Shown: positions 18,662 through 52,327 of the stretch, piece by piece
Numbering within the stretch: position 1 is the first letter of the stretch
How the letters are laid out: each line of letters opens with the position of its first letter
Translations under genes and position numbers: made by a program
Sequence record: MK774614.2
Direction: 5' to 3' (one strand)
Length of the DNA: 64,000 bases
Notes under the pieces: generated by a model
Databases searched by the model: none
What the model was told of the DNA's origin: nothing
What the model saw: only the letters and a program-made list of their open reading frames with translations

Positions 18662-19510
18662 TTATTTTCTACGTGGAACTAGCATCCTCAGCGAGTCCGA
18701 AACCCCTTTAGGATCTGCATAAGCAAGATAACGTTGAATTTCTTCTTCGAAGAACTCTCTGAATTGTACACCAGCGTCACGATACTCATTAACTTCTTCT
18801 CGTATCTCGTCAATAGAGACACCAAAACGTGCAACAGCTTCTTGCATCCCGCGCCGACAGGTTTTATAGATATAAGCCTTTACGCCCAATTCAACCAGTT
18901 TTGCCATCTGGAAATAAGATTTTGGAGGTATTGTGCTAAAGTGTTCATCATAACTTAGAACAACCTTTGCCACCATGTTGAACATAGCGGATCCAGCATC
19001 ACGGATTAAGAACGTGTTATTCCCTACCATAGTAAAATGAGTGTAAACACGTTGGACTTGTCCGTTATCTAATCCTTGCATTAACCGGTTCATGGCATTG
19101 CCCATCTCACCGCCACCATTACAAGTCTCATAAGAACTGAAGTTATAACCAGCTGCAACAGCACGATTAATGTTTCCAGGATAAACTTCTAAGACACTTA
19201 GGATTTTTCTTCCACCTGTTAGGAAATCAGGAACGTTAACGTGAATAGTCCCGCCAGAAAGGCTCTTTATATGTGCGCCACTGAGATCTATAATTTCCGT
19301 ATTTCCTGAGGCTGCATTAAAAAGAGGGTTAATCATTTTAGCAATGACCTTTTCTCTAATCCCTTGTTCAATACTGTATTCAGTATTTTGATCACCCCAG
19401 ACAAACCCCGTGCCGTTGTTTGGATTATCAAAGGCAAGCTTTAATAAATAGTCACTGATGTCGGAAGTTCCTTCGACAACATATGAGATGCAAAAATCAA
19501 CCATGTTCAT
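18662..19510 (-). CDS. Conserved phiKZ-like virion-associated protein
   Basis: 282 aa, AAGGA RBS, co-directional with 17174..18652. Confidence 0.5.
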   Translation of the reverse strand: MNMVDFCISYVVEGTSDISDYLLKLAFDNPNNGTGFVWGDQNTEYSIEQGIREKVIAKMINPLFNAASGNTEIIDLSGAHIKSLSGGTIHVNVPDFLTGGRKILSVLEVYPGNINRAVAAGYNFSSYETCNGGGEMGNAMNRLMQGLDNGQVQRVYTHFTMVGNNTFLIRDAGSAMFNMVAKVVLSYDEHFSTIPPKSYFQMAKLVELGVKAYIYKTCRRGMQEAVARFGVSIDEIREEVNEYRDAGVQFREFFEEEIQRYLAYADPKGVSDSLRMLVPRRK

Positions 19511-19562
19511 GATTGTTTCCTTTTAATGAAGTTTGGTACAAAAGATCGACCAGCAAACATAA

Positions 19563-19597
19563 CCCCTACCCAAGCCCCATGAAGGACCTGGGTAGGG
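19563..19597 (-). terminator. Hairpin ending the tRNA-region transcript
   Basis: CCCTACCCA...TGGGTAGGG stem; on the minus strand it ends GGGTAGGGGTT, the same motif that ends the elements at 23514 and 27890. Confidence 0.5.
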
Positions 19598-19619
19598 AAT
19601 ACATCATAATTAATGTCCT

Positions 19620-20047
19620 TCCCACTGCTCCCATCAATACGATATCTCGTGGCCTTTGAGATAACATAAAGAAAGAAACAGTAGGCTGAGCACTAAAGCA
19701 CAACTTCCAAAGCGACCAGCCTTGGCGGACTGTTTACCGTTAATCATTGTTTGGTCTGGCGACTGGAGGGAATGTAATCCCTAGACCTGCCCTCAGGCAT
19801 TCTTTTCTGCAGCGCAACAAAGATCACGATATTCAAGCGCCTTGAATAACAAGGTCACTTTTTGGTTACAGTTAAACCAAATATAATAGTGAAAGTTAAC
19901 GCACCAGCGCCCAGCGCAAGTATCGTTAAATACCTTTCACACCCAGCTGGAATCAACCAGCGAGATTGGGAATCCTTCTATCTGTAGACAGCTAAATACA
20001 ATTTGTGCTAAAGAGACAAAGCGAATCAAGAAGGCACAAATAGAAGG
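19620..20047 (-). ncRNA. Candidate structured non-coding RNA downstream of tRNA-CAU
   Basis: No ORF of 60 aa or more; nested stems (19889-19901 with 19924-19940; 19830-19837 with 19841-19848; 19974-19980 with 20041-20047). Confidence 0.4.
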
Positions 20048-20052
20048 AAAGG

Positions 20053-20130
20053 TGGTGGTCCCTGGAGGATTCAAACCTACCGACATCTCGATTATGAGTC
20101 AAGAGCTCTAATCAACTGAGCTAAGGGACC
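20053..20130 (-). tRNA. tRNA with CAU anticodon (closest to Ile2, lysidine type; Met possible)
   Basis: GGTCCCT/AGGGACC acceptor, GCTC/GAGC D-stem, CT-CAT-AA loop, encoded ACCA. Resembles E. coli ileX. Has A19/T56 and a one-base T-stem bulge. Confidence 0.9.
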
Positions 20131-20139
20131 TGGGTTAGG

Positions 20140-20498
20140 TTTTGGATCTACTCTATGTCGTCATGGTAACTATGGAGTTCCATCGTGTTTGTTTACAACA
20201 AATTAACCCAATTCGAGTCGGGGATGCGCAGCTGTCGTAAACGTTGAGTGTGACAAAGTCGTGAGTCAGATCCAAAAAGGTTATTGAGTTAACTAAGTTG
20301 CCCACTAAGACCTAACACACAACGATACAACATTGAGGATTGGTTAAAGTCTTAGCTAACTCAAATAAGGAGGAATTTCCTCTCTAAAACAGGGGATGTT
20401 TGTGCCATGGGAGCGAGAGAGGAAACTCCGAAAAGGGCCGAGAACGGAATCATAAGTTTCACCAAGTCTTTTTTATGACTTACTTATGTCCGTCTCGG
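20140..20498 (-). ncRNA. Candidate structured RNA between the two tRNAs
   Basis: Four long back-to-back hairpins; two mismatches become G-U pairs only on the minus strand. Confidence 0.5.
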
Positions 20499-20534
20499 GG
20501 GTTCTGTACCAAACAGGTTTGATATAGAAGCAAG

Positions 20535-20619
20535 TGGTCCACGAGGCGGGAGTCTAACCCGCATGTCCTAAGACGGCGTGTTTTAAGCACGCTCTGTATA
20601 ACTATTCCAGCACTCGTGG
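20535..20619 (-). tRNA. tRNA-Leu (UAA)
   Basis: CCACGAG/CTCGTGG acceptor, GCGTG-CT-TAA-AA-CACGC anticodon arm, long variable arm, A73, encoded CCA. Has T19/A56. Confidence 0.92.
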
Positions 20620-20872
20620 GAATTTCGTTACATACCATTCTAATACAGTATGTTTAAATAGATCCAGATCCGAAGACCTGGAAGGTTTCTAAACACAACA
20701 TACAACTTTAACCTGCATGGAGAGTGGACCGACCATAATCGGTTCTTTACTCATTAGGTGGTAAAAGTGATTTGTGTTAAAGAATAGACGGGATCCTTGA
20801 GTCAAAAGGAAGATCTAGCTGACATGCCCAGTCAATGCTAAACCAAGTAAAACCACAAGGATCCCTAAACTG

Positions 20873-21450
20873 TCTTTTTAATCATCACTCGTTGAATAAG
20901 GATTAAAAAGAGCCAGACGCAATGCCACACCTGGCTTATTCTAAACATAAAATAAAAGGCTAAGAAAATGAAAAGAAAACTATAGCAAATTTGAAGGGCA
21001 TTACCGCGATGTAAGAACCTTCCTAATAGACACTTAATAAATATCCATTAGGAAGGTGGGAGAGTCGAGCCTCTCTCCCAACTTAATCTACTTCGTAAGG
21101 AAAACAACAATGAATCGCAACAGGTTACGCTTCTTAATAAGCTCTGAACAAGAACACATTAAGAAGTGCACATCGGTAGCGAAAGGATGCACACTTTATC
21201 TTAGTTAGGAGATGACAATGGCAATTAAGCAATGAAAGAGACGAACTAAGGCGGAGCACGTGACTTTCTTAATAGATACTCAATTGAAAATACCTATTAA
21301 GAAAGTGAGAGTTAGGGAGACTCTCACAGTATATTACCAGGAGTTAAAGTAATGCAACCTACTTTAGAAACAAAGCTCAGCGGAAAGCACCGTTTCTCAA
21401 TACACACTATTGGAAAATGTTTATTGAGAAAGTAAGCAGTCTGTGACATA
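20873..21450. repeat. Tandem array of five diverged multi-hairpin units (~110-145 nt period)
   Basis: Each unit begins with a YTTYyyAAT-N19-22-ATTrrRAAr inverted repeat (20873, 21018, 21130, 21263, 21393). In units 1-4 it is followed by a second hairpin and an RBS-like AGG plus ATG. Confidence 0.75.
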
Positions 21451-21463
21451 CAATAGTTAAGTT

Positions 21464-21495
21464 CCATAATTTTTCAAGTAGATATTATCAAGATG
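21464..21495 (+). promoter_or_regulatory. Early-type phage promoter heading the accessory region
   Basis: CCATAATTTTTCAAGTAGATATTATCAAGATG. Related copies at ~9757, 28321, 30290, 33551, 38902, 45844, 48233, 50425, 54121, 58768, 63929. Confidence 0.75.
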
Positions 21496-21558
21496 ATAAC
21501 TTGGGAAAAGGTTATCCATTGAAACACTGTTTACACTATTTTAGCAAGGGGCTAAATC

Positions 21559-22191
21559 ATGGAATTCCTCAGTATTGAAAAACTCATTAAATATTCGCTT
21601 CAACATGTCTTTGAAAAGATTGAAGTGAAGCCGTTGGTAGTAGATACTAATTTGATCAACAAACATCGACTGGAAAGTTTCCCTCATCGGAATATAAAGG
21701 CAGTTTCATTCTTTTTGGATGACTCTGTTCGCTACATCATGTTCTACATGGATGTTCGAGGAGAAACACTCTTTACAAGGCCAAAGTCTGGGATCTTAAT
21801 TAAACTGACCCAGGAGCTTCGTAGCAGTGATTTTCGAAATACCTTGACAGAAGACTTCACTGAGTATGAAAGTGTCATGGGAATATTCCTGGAACACTAC
21901 ATCAATCAAAAAGCAGAAGAAGATATCCGAATCTTTTTGGAACGGTTGGTAACTCGTCAAAAAGAGAAAACAGGCAAAGAACATAAATACACCACAGGGT
22001 ACCACGTCATCAAACACAATAAAGAAACGATGGACTATCAAGCGATCTTTGAAGTGTTTGTCAAATCACCTGATCAAGGGGATGACGAGTTTGTAGGATA
22101 CTCCGGGGAGATCAGTTCCGGTGTTCCTGCGACGTTTGTCAATCGCCAAAAAGATGGGATGAAAACAACCTTGATGGACGTTTTCTCCTAA
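21559..22191 (+). CDS. Hypothetical protein
   Basis: 210 aa, AAGGGG RBS, downstream of an early promoter. Confidence 0.7.
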   Translation: MEFLSIEKLIKYSLQHVFEKIEVKPLVVDTNLINKHRLESFPHRNIKAVSFFLDDSVRYIMFYMDVRGETLFTRPKSGILIKLTQELRSSDFRNTLTEDFTEYESVMGIFLEHYINQKAEEDIRIFLERLVTRQKEKTGKEHKYTTGYHVIKHNKETMDYQAIFEVFVKSPDQGDDEFVGYSGEISSGVPATFVNRQKDGMKTTLMDVFS

Positions 22192-22955: not shown

Positions 22956-23194
22956 ACAAACATTAACTGGTAACTGGACTTCGGTCTGGTTACTGGTTTT
23001 TATTATTTCATTACAAAAGTTACCCAATATATGTAAACTTAGATGCTACTTACCGATAGGTAGGAGTGGGGAAGGGGATTTTGTTTATATAGGGTTTACG
23101 AAGTAAACATCCTTATTTCTGTTAATCAGTAGTCTTTTAAGTTACGTTAAAAGGGATAAACTATAAGGGAATAAACGTAAATAAAATAGTTATG

Positions 23195-23525
23195 TATATT
23201 ATATGTGTGAAATAGCTTCGATAACACTTTCCCTCTATCCACCCGGGTGTTATCAATGGGGTTATTTCATTTCTTCCTCTTGTTCTTTTGGGTGGACCTA
23301 CGGGGATTTTCTTCATTCTCCTTCTACCCCGGTTTGATTACTATCTTTATATTTATCTTTAATAGACTAAGTAAAGTAAAATAGCAAAGATAATAAACAA
23401 TTAGAAAATAGAAAAGAATACAGGAAATAAGAACAAGAGAAGATTACCGGAAAAGGGGTCCGGGGAAAAACCAATTTATACCTAAAACCAATCTGGAGAG
23501 CAATCTCTGGGTTGGGTAGGGGTTT
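23195..23525 (+). ncRNA. ORF-free element A (T-rich then A-rich halves)
   Basis: Starts TATATTATATGT, ends GGGTAGGGGTTT; perfect 11-bp long-range pair 23277-23287/23429-23439; shares motifs with element B. Confidence 0.4.
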
Positions 23526-23558
23526 GTTTGTCCAATAAACATTTTAGAGGAATTTACT

Positions 23559-51888: not shown

Positions 51889-52327
51889 AAACTGCATTAA
51901 CACATGTTAATGCTTTAGTCCCGCTGGGGTGAAAGTCCTAGTGTGTACTTCTTGAATTGCTGGAAAGCCCACAAAAGTTCTCTACCTAAGCATGATTGGA
52001 AACATACATGTTCACGGTGTCGAAAGACAAAAACAACAGAGAACCTGTCCTAAGCTAAAACATAATGCTAAGGGATATTAACAAGGGGTTCCCAAGCAGC
52101 CGAGGTTCTAAATACATTCGAGATGAATGGATACGAATCAGGTTCAACGACTATCCCGTGGCTGGGAGTAGGGTCACCCGGTGATCTGAAGTATGAAGTA
52201 CCTAACCGTGTAATGACGTAGGTAATGATATAGTCTGCTCCACCCTAATAAGGATGGCGGGTGCCAGGTATCGCACCGGCGTTATTATGATAACCTTCGG
52301 GTGAACGGTAATAACGTGGACAAAAGG
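51889..52327 (+). mobile_element. ORF-less group I intron (439 nt)
   Basis: 5' exon ends in U paired to G in P1 (gat|aaa...tttagtc); P-like AATTGCTGGAAA at 51955; P7 GACTA 52149 with TAGTC 52231 inside GATATAGTC; terminal G 52327; splicing restores GAD-FDGD in frame. Confidence 0.92.

Follow-up and report, generated by a model that had tools for sequence, protein, structure and literature searches.

The tertiary pair G19-C56 is taught as an invariant feature of tRNA and as a docking platform for RNase P, T-box RNAs and the L1 stalk. Large lytic phages, both jumbo and T4-like (including Aswh_1), encode codon-supply tRNAs, which have an encoded CCA, read A-ending codons and serve an AT-richer phage in a GC-rich host. 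Another kind of phage tRNA is represented by those that escape host nucleases. These are phage-encoded versions of host isoacceptors with changes at conserved positions and fast allele turnover among close relatives, and the described escapes are changes in the anticodon loop. Outside phages, animal mitochondrial tRNAs have lost the canonical G19-C56 identity, and their D/T-loop interaction is weakened or lost. Literature searches on elbow variants of phage tRNAs returned neither the anticodon-loop escape cases nor any description of A19-U56 or other elbow-pair variants in phage tRNAs. The pair itself has been mutated in other tRNAs. A yeast suppressor tRNA tolerates no single mutation at either G19 or C56 (Guy et al. 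2014). In tRNA-Leu of Aquifex aeolicus, G19C leaves no measurable charging, and the double mutant G19U:C56A restores leucylation, with a relative kcat/Km of 0.54 (Yao et al. 2008, PMC2377443). RNase P, the T-box and the L1 stalk recognize the elbow by stacking, which is not sequence-specific and is biased toward purines (Zhang and Ferre-D'Amare 2016, PMC4919913). The minimal substrate of TruB/Pus4 has been defined as 53-GUUYRANYC-61 (Roovers et al. 2021, PMC7912444).

The two tRNAs of Aeromonas phage CF8, which have A19-U56 in one case and U19-A56 in the other, can be compared with each of these systems. They resemble the codon-supply tRNAs of large lytic phages in their encoded CCA, in the A-ending codons that they read and in that the phage is AT-richer and its host GC-rich. 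With the nuclease-escaping tRNAs they share the character of host-isoacceptor copies deviating at conserved positions, as well as the fast turnover of alleles among close relatives. However, the deviation in CF8 is at the elbow rather than in the anticodon loop, and we know of no cognate nuclease, nor of any nuclease or defence system that reads positions 19-56. As in animal mitochondrial tRNAs, the canonical identity of the pair is lost, but in CF8 a Watson-Crick pair and the other tertiary nucleotides are kept. The engineered Aquifex double mutant matches the CF8 tRNA-Leu both in tRNA identity and in the exact replacement of the pair (PMC2377443). This mutant was made in the laboratory and assayed in vitro with the enzyme of a thermophile, whereas the CF8 allele is natural.

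The window analyzed here, a stretch of 64,000 nucleotides, is 100% identical to the genome of CF8 (MK774614.2), and its coordinates equal those of the record; the genes, hairpins and spacer located below are all on the minus strand. CF8, which was isolated on Aeromonas hydrophila, belongs to the genus Chaoshanvirus in the nucleus-forming family Chimalliviridae and has a genome of 238 kb. ARAGORN, on which the tRNA structures rest throughout, finds only two tRNA genes in the whole genome, labelled in GenBank as tRNA-Leu and tRNA-Ile (with the note tRNA-Ile2). Published work citing CF8 does not discuss them. The tRNA locus (19511-21558) comprises ~2 kb without annotated genes and contains 11 terminator-like hairpins versus 2.0 expected. 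One of these, followed by a T-run, is located just upstream of tRNA-Leu (20663-20682) and persists in relatives, where the bases of its stem have changed. Directly downstream of tRNA-Leu there is a conserved long hairpin (20435-20500), for which RNAalifold predicts 21 pairs, five of them with compensatory changes, from the sequences of CF8, ZPAH34 and AerS_266. The two tRNA genes are separated by a conserved non-coding spacer of ~230 nt (20131-20362), found only in Chaoshanvirus, which is possibly structured, as weak evidence from three sequences suggests. A strong terminator-like hairpin of 16 pairs (19563-19598) closes the non-coding tRNA locus and precedes CF8_0013. Neither Pfam nor PHROGs yielded a function for the flanking CF8 genes, and tRNA-directed enzymes, such as an RNA ligase or a CCA-adding enzyme, are missing from the CF8 annotation. 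In ZPAH34 and AerS_266, a gene for a SAM-dependent methyltransferase, absent from the CF8 window, adjoins the tRNA locus. It was considered as a partner of the elbow change and dropped, being a generic, sub-threshold match to Methyltransf_23 with no tie to tRNA.

The gene with the CAU anticodon (20053-20130) encodes a tRNA of the Ile2 type with an encoded CCA, recognized by ARAGORN, by the Rfam tRNA model RF00005 (53.7 bits) and in the GenBank annotation (tRNA-Ile2). Its D-loop, AGTTGATTA, gives G18 followed by A19 (20112), and base 19 is the one difference between its D-arm and the very common GCTCAGTTGGTTAGAGC arm. Both the sequence and the structure place U56 at position 20073, the third base of the T-loop TTTGAAT. 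RNAfold regenerates the cloverleaf. In its minimum free energy structure, the 5' strand of the T-stem, GGTAGG, is opposite CCTCC, and U 20079 bulges amid five Watson-Crick pairs; this is the extra T-stem base noticed in the sequence-only reading of the window. The CAU tRNA of Klebsiella phage KB57 has an equal T-stem architecture, with a bulged C and a canonical elbow, so the bulge is an inherited trait of this tRNA family, separate from the elbow change. When whole tRNAs are compared, many other Klebsiella phages match the CF8 gene at ~80% identity, and it aligns with Ile2-type CAU tRNAs from other phages of Gammaproteobacteria. The best full-length matches in Escherichia coli (75.6% identity) are annotated as tRNA-Ile. 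No homologue of tRNA-CAU with more than 81% identity was found, and an exact-arm scan of IMG/VR with its T-arm gave no match.

The second gene (20535-20619, GenBank CF8_0246) encodes a tRNA-Leu(UAA) of class II with the typical long variable arm and an encoded CCA. Its D-loop lacks the GG dinucleotide, so that numbering relies on equal-length alignment to canonical loops. ARAGORN calls an 11-nt loop closed by a 3-bp D-stem, equal in length to the GG-containing loop of relatives, and U19 (20601; G18 is 20602) is aligned to the second G of their GG. A56 (20555) is the third base of the 7-nt T-loop TTAGACT, as defined by the sequence and the ARAGORN structure. RF00005 does not match this tRNA at E<=10, either in the window or in the homologue from the metagenomic contig L322 described below, whereas the canonical tRNA-Leu of ZPAH34 scores 56.8 bits in the same model (gathering threshold, 29 bits). 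The TruB/Pus4 consensus is fitted by tRNA-CAU, with its U56, and violated by A56 of tRNA-Leu; since A56 departs from the consensus, U55 of CF8 tRNA-Leu may be poorly modified.

In their other conserved nucleotides the two tRNAs are canonical. Both have a complete cloverleaf with a 7-bp acceptor stem, a 7-nt anticodon loop containing U33 and A37 and a 7-nt T-loop, and both carry A73 and the encoded CCA. U8, A14, the R15-Y48 Levitt pair, G18, G53-C61, U54-A58, U55 and R57 are all in place. G19 and C56 are absent from both, and complementarity between positions 19 and 56 is retained. The observation of the sequence-only reading that both tRNAs exchange G19-C56 for a Watson-Crick pair, A19-U56 and U19-A56, respectively, is thus correct, and every coordinate that it gave for these bases is exact.

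To place the two genes among their relatives, we relied on the phage GenBank collection; the neighbouring virion protein used as a query in IMG/VR retrieved no relatives. The nearest relatives of CF8 are ZPAH34 and AerS_266. Codon-supply tRNAs occupy the same locus in ZPAH34, AerS_266, PS1 and pAEv1810, and a tRNA-Leu(UAA) with G19-C56 is found at the syntenic place in these four phages and in AhC3_1. The Leu-UAA isoacceptor is therefore shared by CF8 and every sampled relative; a CAU tRNA is also present in PS1 and pAEv1810, whereas the position of the second CF8 tRNA is taken by tRNA-Asn in ZPAH34 and AerS_266. Every other tRNA called at the locus in the five related Aeromonas phages is canonical, including the CAU tRNAs of PS1 and pAEv1810. 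A survey of positions 19 and 56 in related jumbo phages, which had been proposed as a check, thus sets CF8, with U19-A56 and A19-U56, apart from its sisters. The Leu genes of CF8 and its nearest relatives are also non-orthologous in sequence. Between CF8 and ZPAH34, tRNA-Leu is 60% identical, with unrelated stems, versus 84% identity for the neighbouring protein.

A diverged homologue of the CF8 tRNA-Leu was obtained by scanning metagenome contigs with its anticodon arm, a selection independent of positions 19 and 56. The contig OEQO01000808.1 (L322) contains a tRNA-Leu identical to that of CF8 at 76 of 85 positions (89%), with the same G18-U19 and A56. Eight of the nine differences combine into four fully compensatory pairs, located in the acceptor, D and T stems, and the ninth is at D-loop position 17; positions 18, 19 and 54-58 are unchanged, and the anticodon arm is identical. 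L322 derives from a Ferozepurvirus whose neighbouring protein is 99% identical to that of pAEv1810, 97% to that of PS1 and 66% to that of CF8. By contrast, pAEv1810 and PS1 carry two other Leu(UAA) genes, which are unrelated to each other and unlike the CF8-type gene of L322. The DNA shared by L322 and CF8 consists only of the tRNA and about six flanking bases, and homology between L322 and pAEv1810 restarts inside the last five bases of the tRNA. Since CF8 and L322 share the tRNA alone, the U19-A56 tRNA-Leu has crossed between genera as a cassette no larger than a tRNA. Ferozepurviruses with a 97-99% identical neighbouring gene thus contain three or more unrelated alleles of tRNA-Leu(UAA) and, judging from these sequences, the Leu gene is replaced very quickly at the CF8-type tRNA locus. 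Such turnover looks like diversifying selection rather than drift. Alternatively, it could come from recombination near homing endonuclease genes, which are present at the locus in PS1 and pAEv1810. In IMG/VR, an exact-arm scan with the Leu anticodon arm gave no match; the Leu T-arm pattern matched nine contigs, where three of the matches are tRNAs, all of other isotypes.

To find out how bases 19 and 56 vary together, IMG/VR, which may include some cellular DNA, was scanned for one common D-arm with each base at position 19, and the T-loops were then read, so that the selection was independent of position 56. G19 was found at more than 118 loci, and C56 accompanies it in 110 of 110 unique tRNAs among the matches listed. 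A19 is present at 46 loci, with U56 in 30 of 32 unique tRNAs, U19 at 14 loci, with A56 in all four unique tRNAs, and C19 at nine loci, with G56 in four of five. The association on this fixed D-arm is very strong (chi-square p ~1e-82, unique sequences only). Because the partner at 56 tracks the base at 19, we conclude that 19-56 is a genuine covarying Watson-Crick tertiary pair. Independent variation of the two positions, which would have spoken against selection, is not seen; instead, they covary tightly across phage and bacterial tRNAs. Together with the L322 homologue, which keeps U19-A56 along with its four compensatory stem pairs, this near-perfect covariation bears out the earlier proposal that the double substitutions reflect selection and not decay. 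The order of abundance on the fixed arm, A19 over U19 over C19, matches mutational accessibility of A-U, U-A and C-G via a G-U intermediate.

Swapped pairs are uncommon. Among 439 phage tRNAs unselected at positions 19 and 56, which are neighbours in phage loci and hence non-independent samples, five lack C56 (1.1%; 95% CI 0.4-2.6%) and none has A56. All five have U56; four of them have A19, assigned without regard to the T-loop, and the fifth is unassignable. The description of G19-C56 as nearly invariant is therefore valid for the textbook set of tRNAs but too strong for those of phages. If the two CF8 tRNAs were independent, the probability of both being swapped by chance would be at most ~7e-4, using the upper confidence bound of the background, and two swaps in two tRNAs do exceed chance. 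However, independence is doubtful since swapped tRNAs tend to share a genome: among the neighbours of such tRNAs, 4.8% are swapped too, versus 1.1% (Fisher p = 0.0016), suggesting that genomes vary in their propensity for the swap. Loci with swapped tRNAs are slightly more AT-rich (GC 0.338 vs 0.372, p = 0.004). AT mutation pressure was considered as the sole cause of the swap and rejected: the GC content of the CF8 tRNA-Leu is 54%, its T-stem is rich in GC, and two transversions are required for U19-A56.

The same exchange is also found in cellular genomes. Over 120 contigs of bacterial genomes contain the A19 arm, and U56 accompanies it in 108 of 109 tRNAs there. Among the 80 bacterial matches listed, 38 are from Saccharibacteria and 15 from Alphaproteobacteria MAGs, with Spiroplasma, a phytoplasma and others among the rest. 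The isotypes are mainly Ala and Val, and the neighbouring tRNAs are canonical. The CF8 genes are thus similar to the tRNAs of these bacteria, and to ~1% of phage tRNAs, in that a Watson-Crick swap is found in an otherwise canonical molecule. The difference is that in bacteria and in phage arrays the swap is confined to particular tRNAs and many others are canonical, whereas in CF8 the whole two-gene set is swapped.

The codon usage of CF8 offers an ordinary reason for both genes. In the 40 long open reading frames of the window, UUA accounts for 15.9% of Leu codons and AUA for 10.8% of Ile codons, with a GC3 of 0.44, and the CF8 genome has 41% GC. Aeromonas hydrophila is GC-rich, and both codons are rare there. 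Because CF8 uses codons that are rare in its host, the supply of UUA and AUA decoders would be a sufficient reason for carrying the two genes. We thus favour, with a probability of about 0.6, the explanation that the CF8 tRNAs are functional codon-supply tRNAs whose elbow, a covarying pair, is in an alternative state that is tolerated, the Leu allele having been acquired as a cassette. The two tRNAs would be transcribed together and trimmed by the processing enzymes of the host. Host LeuRS would charge tRNA-Leu, and host IleRS would charge tRNA-CAU after lysidine formation, providing decoders for UUA and AUA, both of which the GC-rich Aeromonas host presumably reads poorly. The elbow would have been replaced by U-A or A-U through compensatory double substitutions, with selection preserving the Watson-Crick geometry at 19-56 and not the identity of the bases. 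Swapped states would arise at low frequency (~1% of phage tRNAs), persist for long and spread horizontally. By analogy with the systems studied, both LeuRS and the known elbow readers are expected to accept swapped elbows. We prefer this explanation because swaps are found in bacterial chromosomes, are sporadic in arrays, follow mutational accessibility and are predicted to be tolerated, and we infer that both tRNAs are expressed and charged and have no special anti-defence role. Several observations sit less easily with a tolerated state: two of two CF8 tRNAs are swapped, and differently; all tRNAs at the locus in the five sampled relatives are canonical; U19-A56 needs two transversions via a mismatch, and single mutants at position 19 are inactive in the systems tested; tRNA-Leu(UAA) alleles turn over very fast; and the Leu gene escapes the Rfam tRNA model.

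The same observations could be read as signs of evasion. The sequence-only reading had proposed that the tRNAs are functional and were redesigned to evade a host nuclease or modifier that recognizes the elbow, or that they act as decoys for one. Function and selected pairing are the parts that agree with the present results; for redesign, whether for evasion or as decoys, no supporting evidence was found. In an adaptive scenario, a host nuclease or modifier would read G19 and/or C56, or the exposed T-loop, and the phage would keep the fold and change the bases, so that its swapped tRNAs would sustain UUA and AUA decoding during an attack on host tRNAs. Such a scenario would account for two different swaps in two tRNAs against a 1.1% background, for the canonical state of close relatives and for the exchange of the U19-A56 Leu allele across genera followed by its maintenance, and an arms race would predict that near-identical Ferozepurviruses differ in Leu(UAA), as they do with at least three unrelated alleles. 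A base-specific reader of this region does exist in TruB/Pus4, the only one identified in the literature consulted; its consensus, with Y at position 56, is violated by A56 and satisfied by U56 (PMC7912444). However, the same swaps, seen in ~1% of phage tRNAs of many isotypes, are also found in bacterial chromosomal tRNAs, where escape from phage defence explains nothing. Most tRNAs in large phage arrays are canonical, with a minority of one to four swapped among 8-22, and the known elbow readers recognize the pair by stacking and not by its sequence (PMC4919913). The relative abundance of A-U, U-A and C-G tracks mutational accessibility, and the fast turnover of Leu alleles could also result from recombination near homing endonucleases. 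We therefore regard evasion as unlikely, with the two differently swapped CF8 genes among canonical relatives and the rapid turnover of tRNA-Leu alleles lending it some plausibility. The broader proposal, that changing the identity of the pair while keeping its geometry is a recurrent counter-defence device against an undescribed host factor reading G19/C56 or the T-loop, appears rather improbable; if it were true, the fully swapped set of CF8 and the cassette spread of the U19-A56 tRNA-Leu would be arms-race signatures.

Functional tuning, in which a weaker or differently stacked elbow pair would act together with the T-stem bulge of tRNA-CAU to adapt modification, or kinetics with EF-Tu and on the ribosome, to the needs of the phage, for instance through loss of pseudouridine 55 in the A56 tRNA, is likewise doubtful. 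A56 does lie outside the TruB consensus, the bulge sits in the stem bound by EF-Tu (albeit in common with the KB57 CAU tRNA), and leucylation of G19U:C56A at about half the wild-type efficiency implies that the swap is not fully neutral (PMC2377443), but the same isoacceptors of sister phages work with canonical elbows. That the two RNAs are decoys or tRNA-like regulators outside translation is very unlikely. The locus is rich in other non-coding RNA that is structured and conserved, and the Leu gene is unrecognized by the Rfam tRNA model; nevertheless, both RNAs form complete cloverleaves with U33, A37, A73 and encoded CCA, the Leu gene has its long variable arm, the CAU gene resembles tRNA-Ile2, the anticodon arm is unchanged in the diverged Leu homologue and both isoacceptors suit the codons that CF8 uses. 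Least credible of all are decaying pseudogenes or sequencing artefacts. Altered 'invariant' nucleotides, a bulged T-stem and a Leu gene without an Rfam match might be taken in this sense, but both changes are paired, all other invariant positions are intact, and the independently assembled L322 contig has U19-A56 together with compensatory changes in the stems.

The present data show that 19-56 behaves as an ordinary covarying Watson-Crick pair, occurring in all four identities, in the tRNAs of phages and of some bacterial lineages with reduced genomes. Swapped tRNAs thus become natural, functional test cases for the requirements of the elbow readers. CF8 is a phage with its entire tRNA set swapped, and its swapped tRNA-Leu moves between phage genera as a gene-sized cassette. 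If there is a tRNA conflict between Aeromonas and its jumbo phages, this fast-turnover locus is where it would show. For annotation, the CF8 Leu gene, omitted by Rfam, illustrates that covariance models can miss swapped tRNAs. Among cultured phages other than CF8, 80 tRNAs from ten loci include one clear swap, which affects the tRNA-His of Aswh_1, a T4-like Aeromonas phage. A possible second swapped case among cultured phages is a 'hypothetical tRNA' of phi92.

The tRNA-Leu(UAA) gene has been swapped as a tRNA-sized cassette, as revealed by comparison of the window with the corresponding loci of the Ferozepurvirus phages pAEv1810 (L007) and PS1 (L006) and of the related metagenomic contig OEQO01000808.1 (L322). 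Such replacement is seen between phages with adjacent genes of 97–99% identity at the protein level. At least three mutually unrelated alleles of tRNA-Leu(UAA) are found at the locus. The gene content of the locus is also variable, with genes for Arg, Met, Asn and Asp tRNAs and for HNH endonucleases having been gained or lost there.

Apparently structured non-coding elements accompany the two tRNA genes of CF8. Directly 3′ of tRNA-Leu lies a long hairpin (20435–20500, minus strand), which is conserved in CF8 and its nearest relatives, ZPAH34 and AerS_266, with compensatory changes in 5 of its 21 pairs across the three genomes. It may act as a processing signal, or else represent a small RNA. 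The tRNA-Leu and tRNA-CAU genes are separated by a conserved non-coding spacer of ~230 nt (20131–20362, minus strand), for which a multi-helix structure is predicted. The spacer is limited to the three Chaoshanvirus genomes, and no counterpart was found in Ferozepurvirus or in the related Aeromonas phage AhC3_1. Overall, the 2.3-kb region 19400–21700 contains 11 terminator-like hairpins versus 2.0 expected from shuffled sequences. Upstream of the tRNAs, the segment 20620–21558 carries no annotated gene.

ZPAH34 encodes a third, unannotated tRNA-like element downstream of tRNA-Asn (L002:5468–5546), which matches the Rfam tRNA model with 38.2 bits and is not called by ARAGORN. Its elbow is canonical, and its anticodon loop comprises 12 nt, versus 6 in the Rfam model. 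No counterpart of this element is detectable in CF8. ZPAH34 and AerS_266 also share a gene for a SAM-dependent methyltransferase near the tRNA locus (L002:1721–2365 and L003:1698–2357, respectively). The corresponding place in CF8 (22956–23558) is a 600-bp gap holding only a 43-aa ORF, and no homologue of the methyltransferase is present anywhere within the CF8 window.

Beyond the 19-56 pair, an apparent second tertiary covariation was observed, in which D-loops where AG replaces G18-G19 co-occur with T-loops starting with TGC, that is, with G55 instead of U55. This combination occurs in eight cases among the neighbouring tRNAs that were not selected by bases 19 and 56, and is found in both viral (e.g. 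L010, L028, L052 and L058) and bacterial loci (among L181–L300). The co-occurrence of the two loop variants points to a putative A18/G55 contact in place of the one between G18 and pseudouridine 55. Two IMG/VR contigs, L343 and L345, contain short tRNA-like sequences, not called by ARAGORN, in which a D-arm with C19 almost directly joins a T-arm with G56, the anticodon arm being apparently missing.

Elsewhere in the window, an Rfam search identified a group I intron (RF00028, 62.1 bits) at 51889–52257 on the plus strand, the start of which coincides with the 3′ end of CF8_0053. In a profile search, the latter gene product matched a family of phage RNA polymerase beta subunits, the match covering profile positions 3–418 of 478. 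CF8_0054, a downstream 59-aa ORF, may be the second exon; in the MK774614.2 record, CF8_0053 and CF8_0054 are listed as two separate hypothetical proteins.
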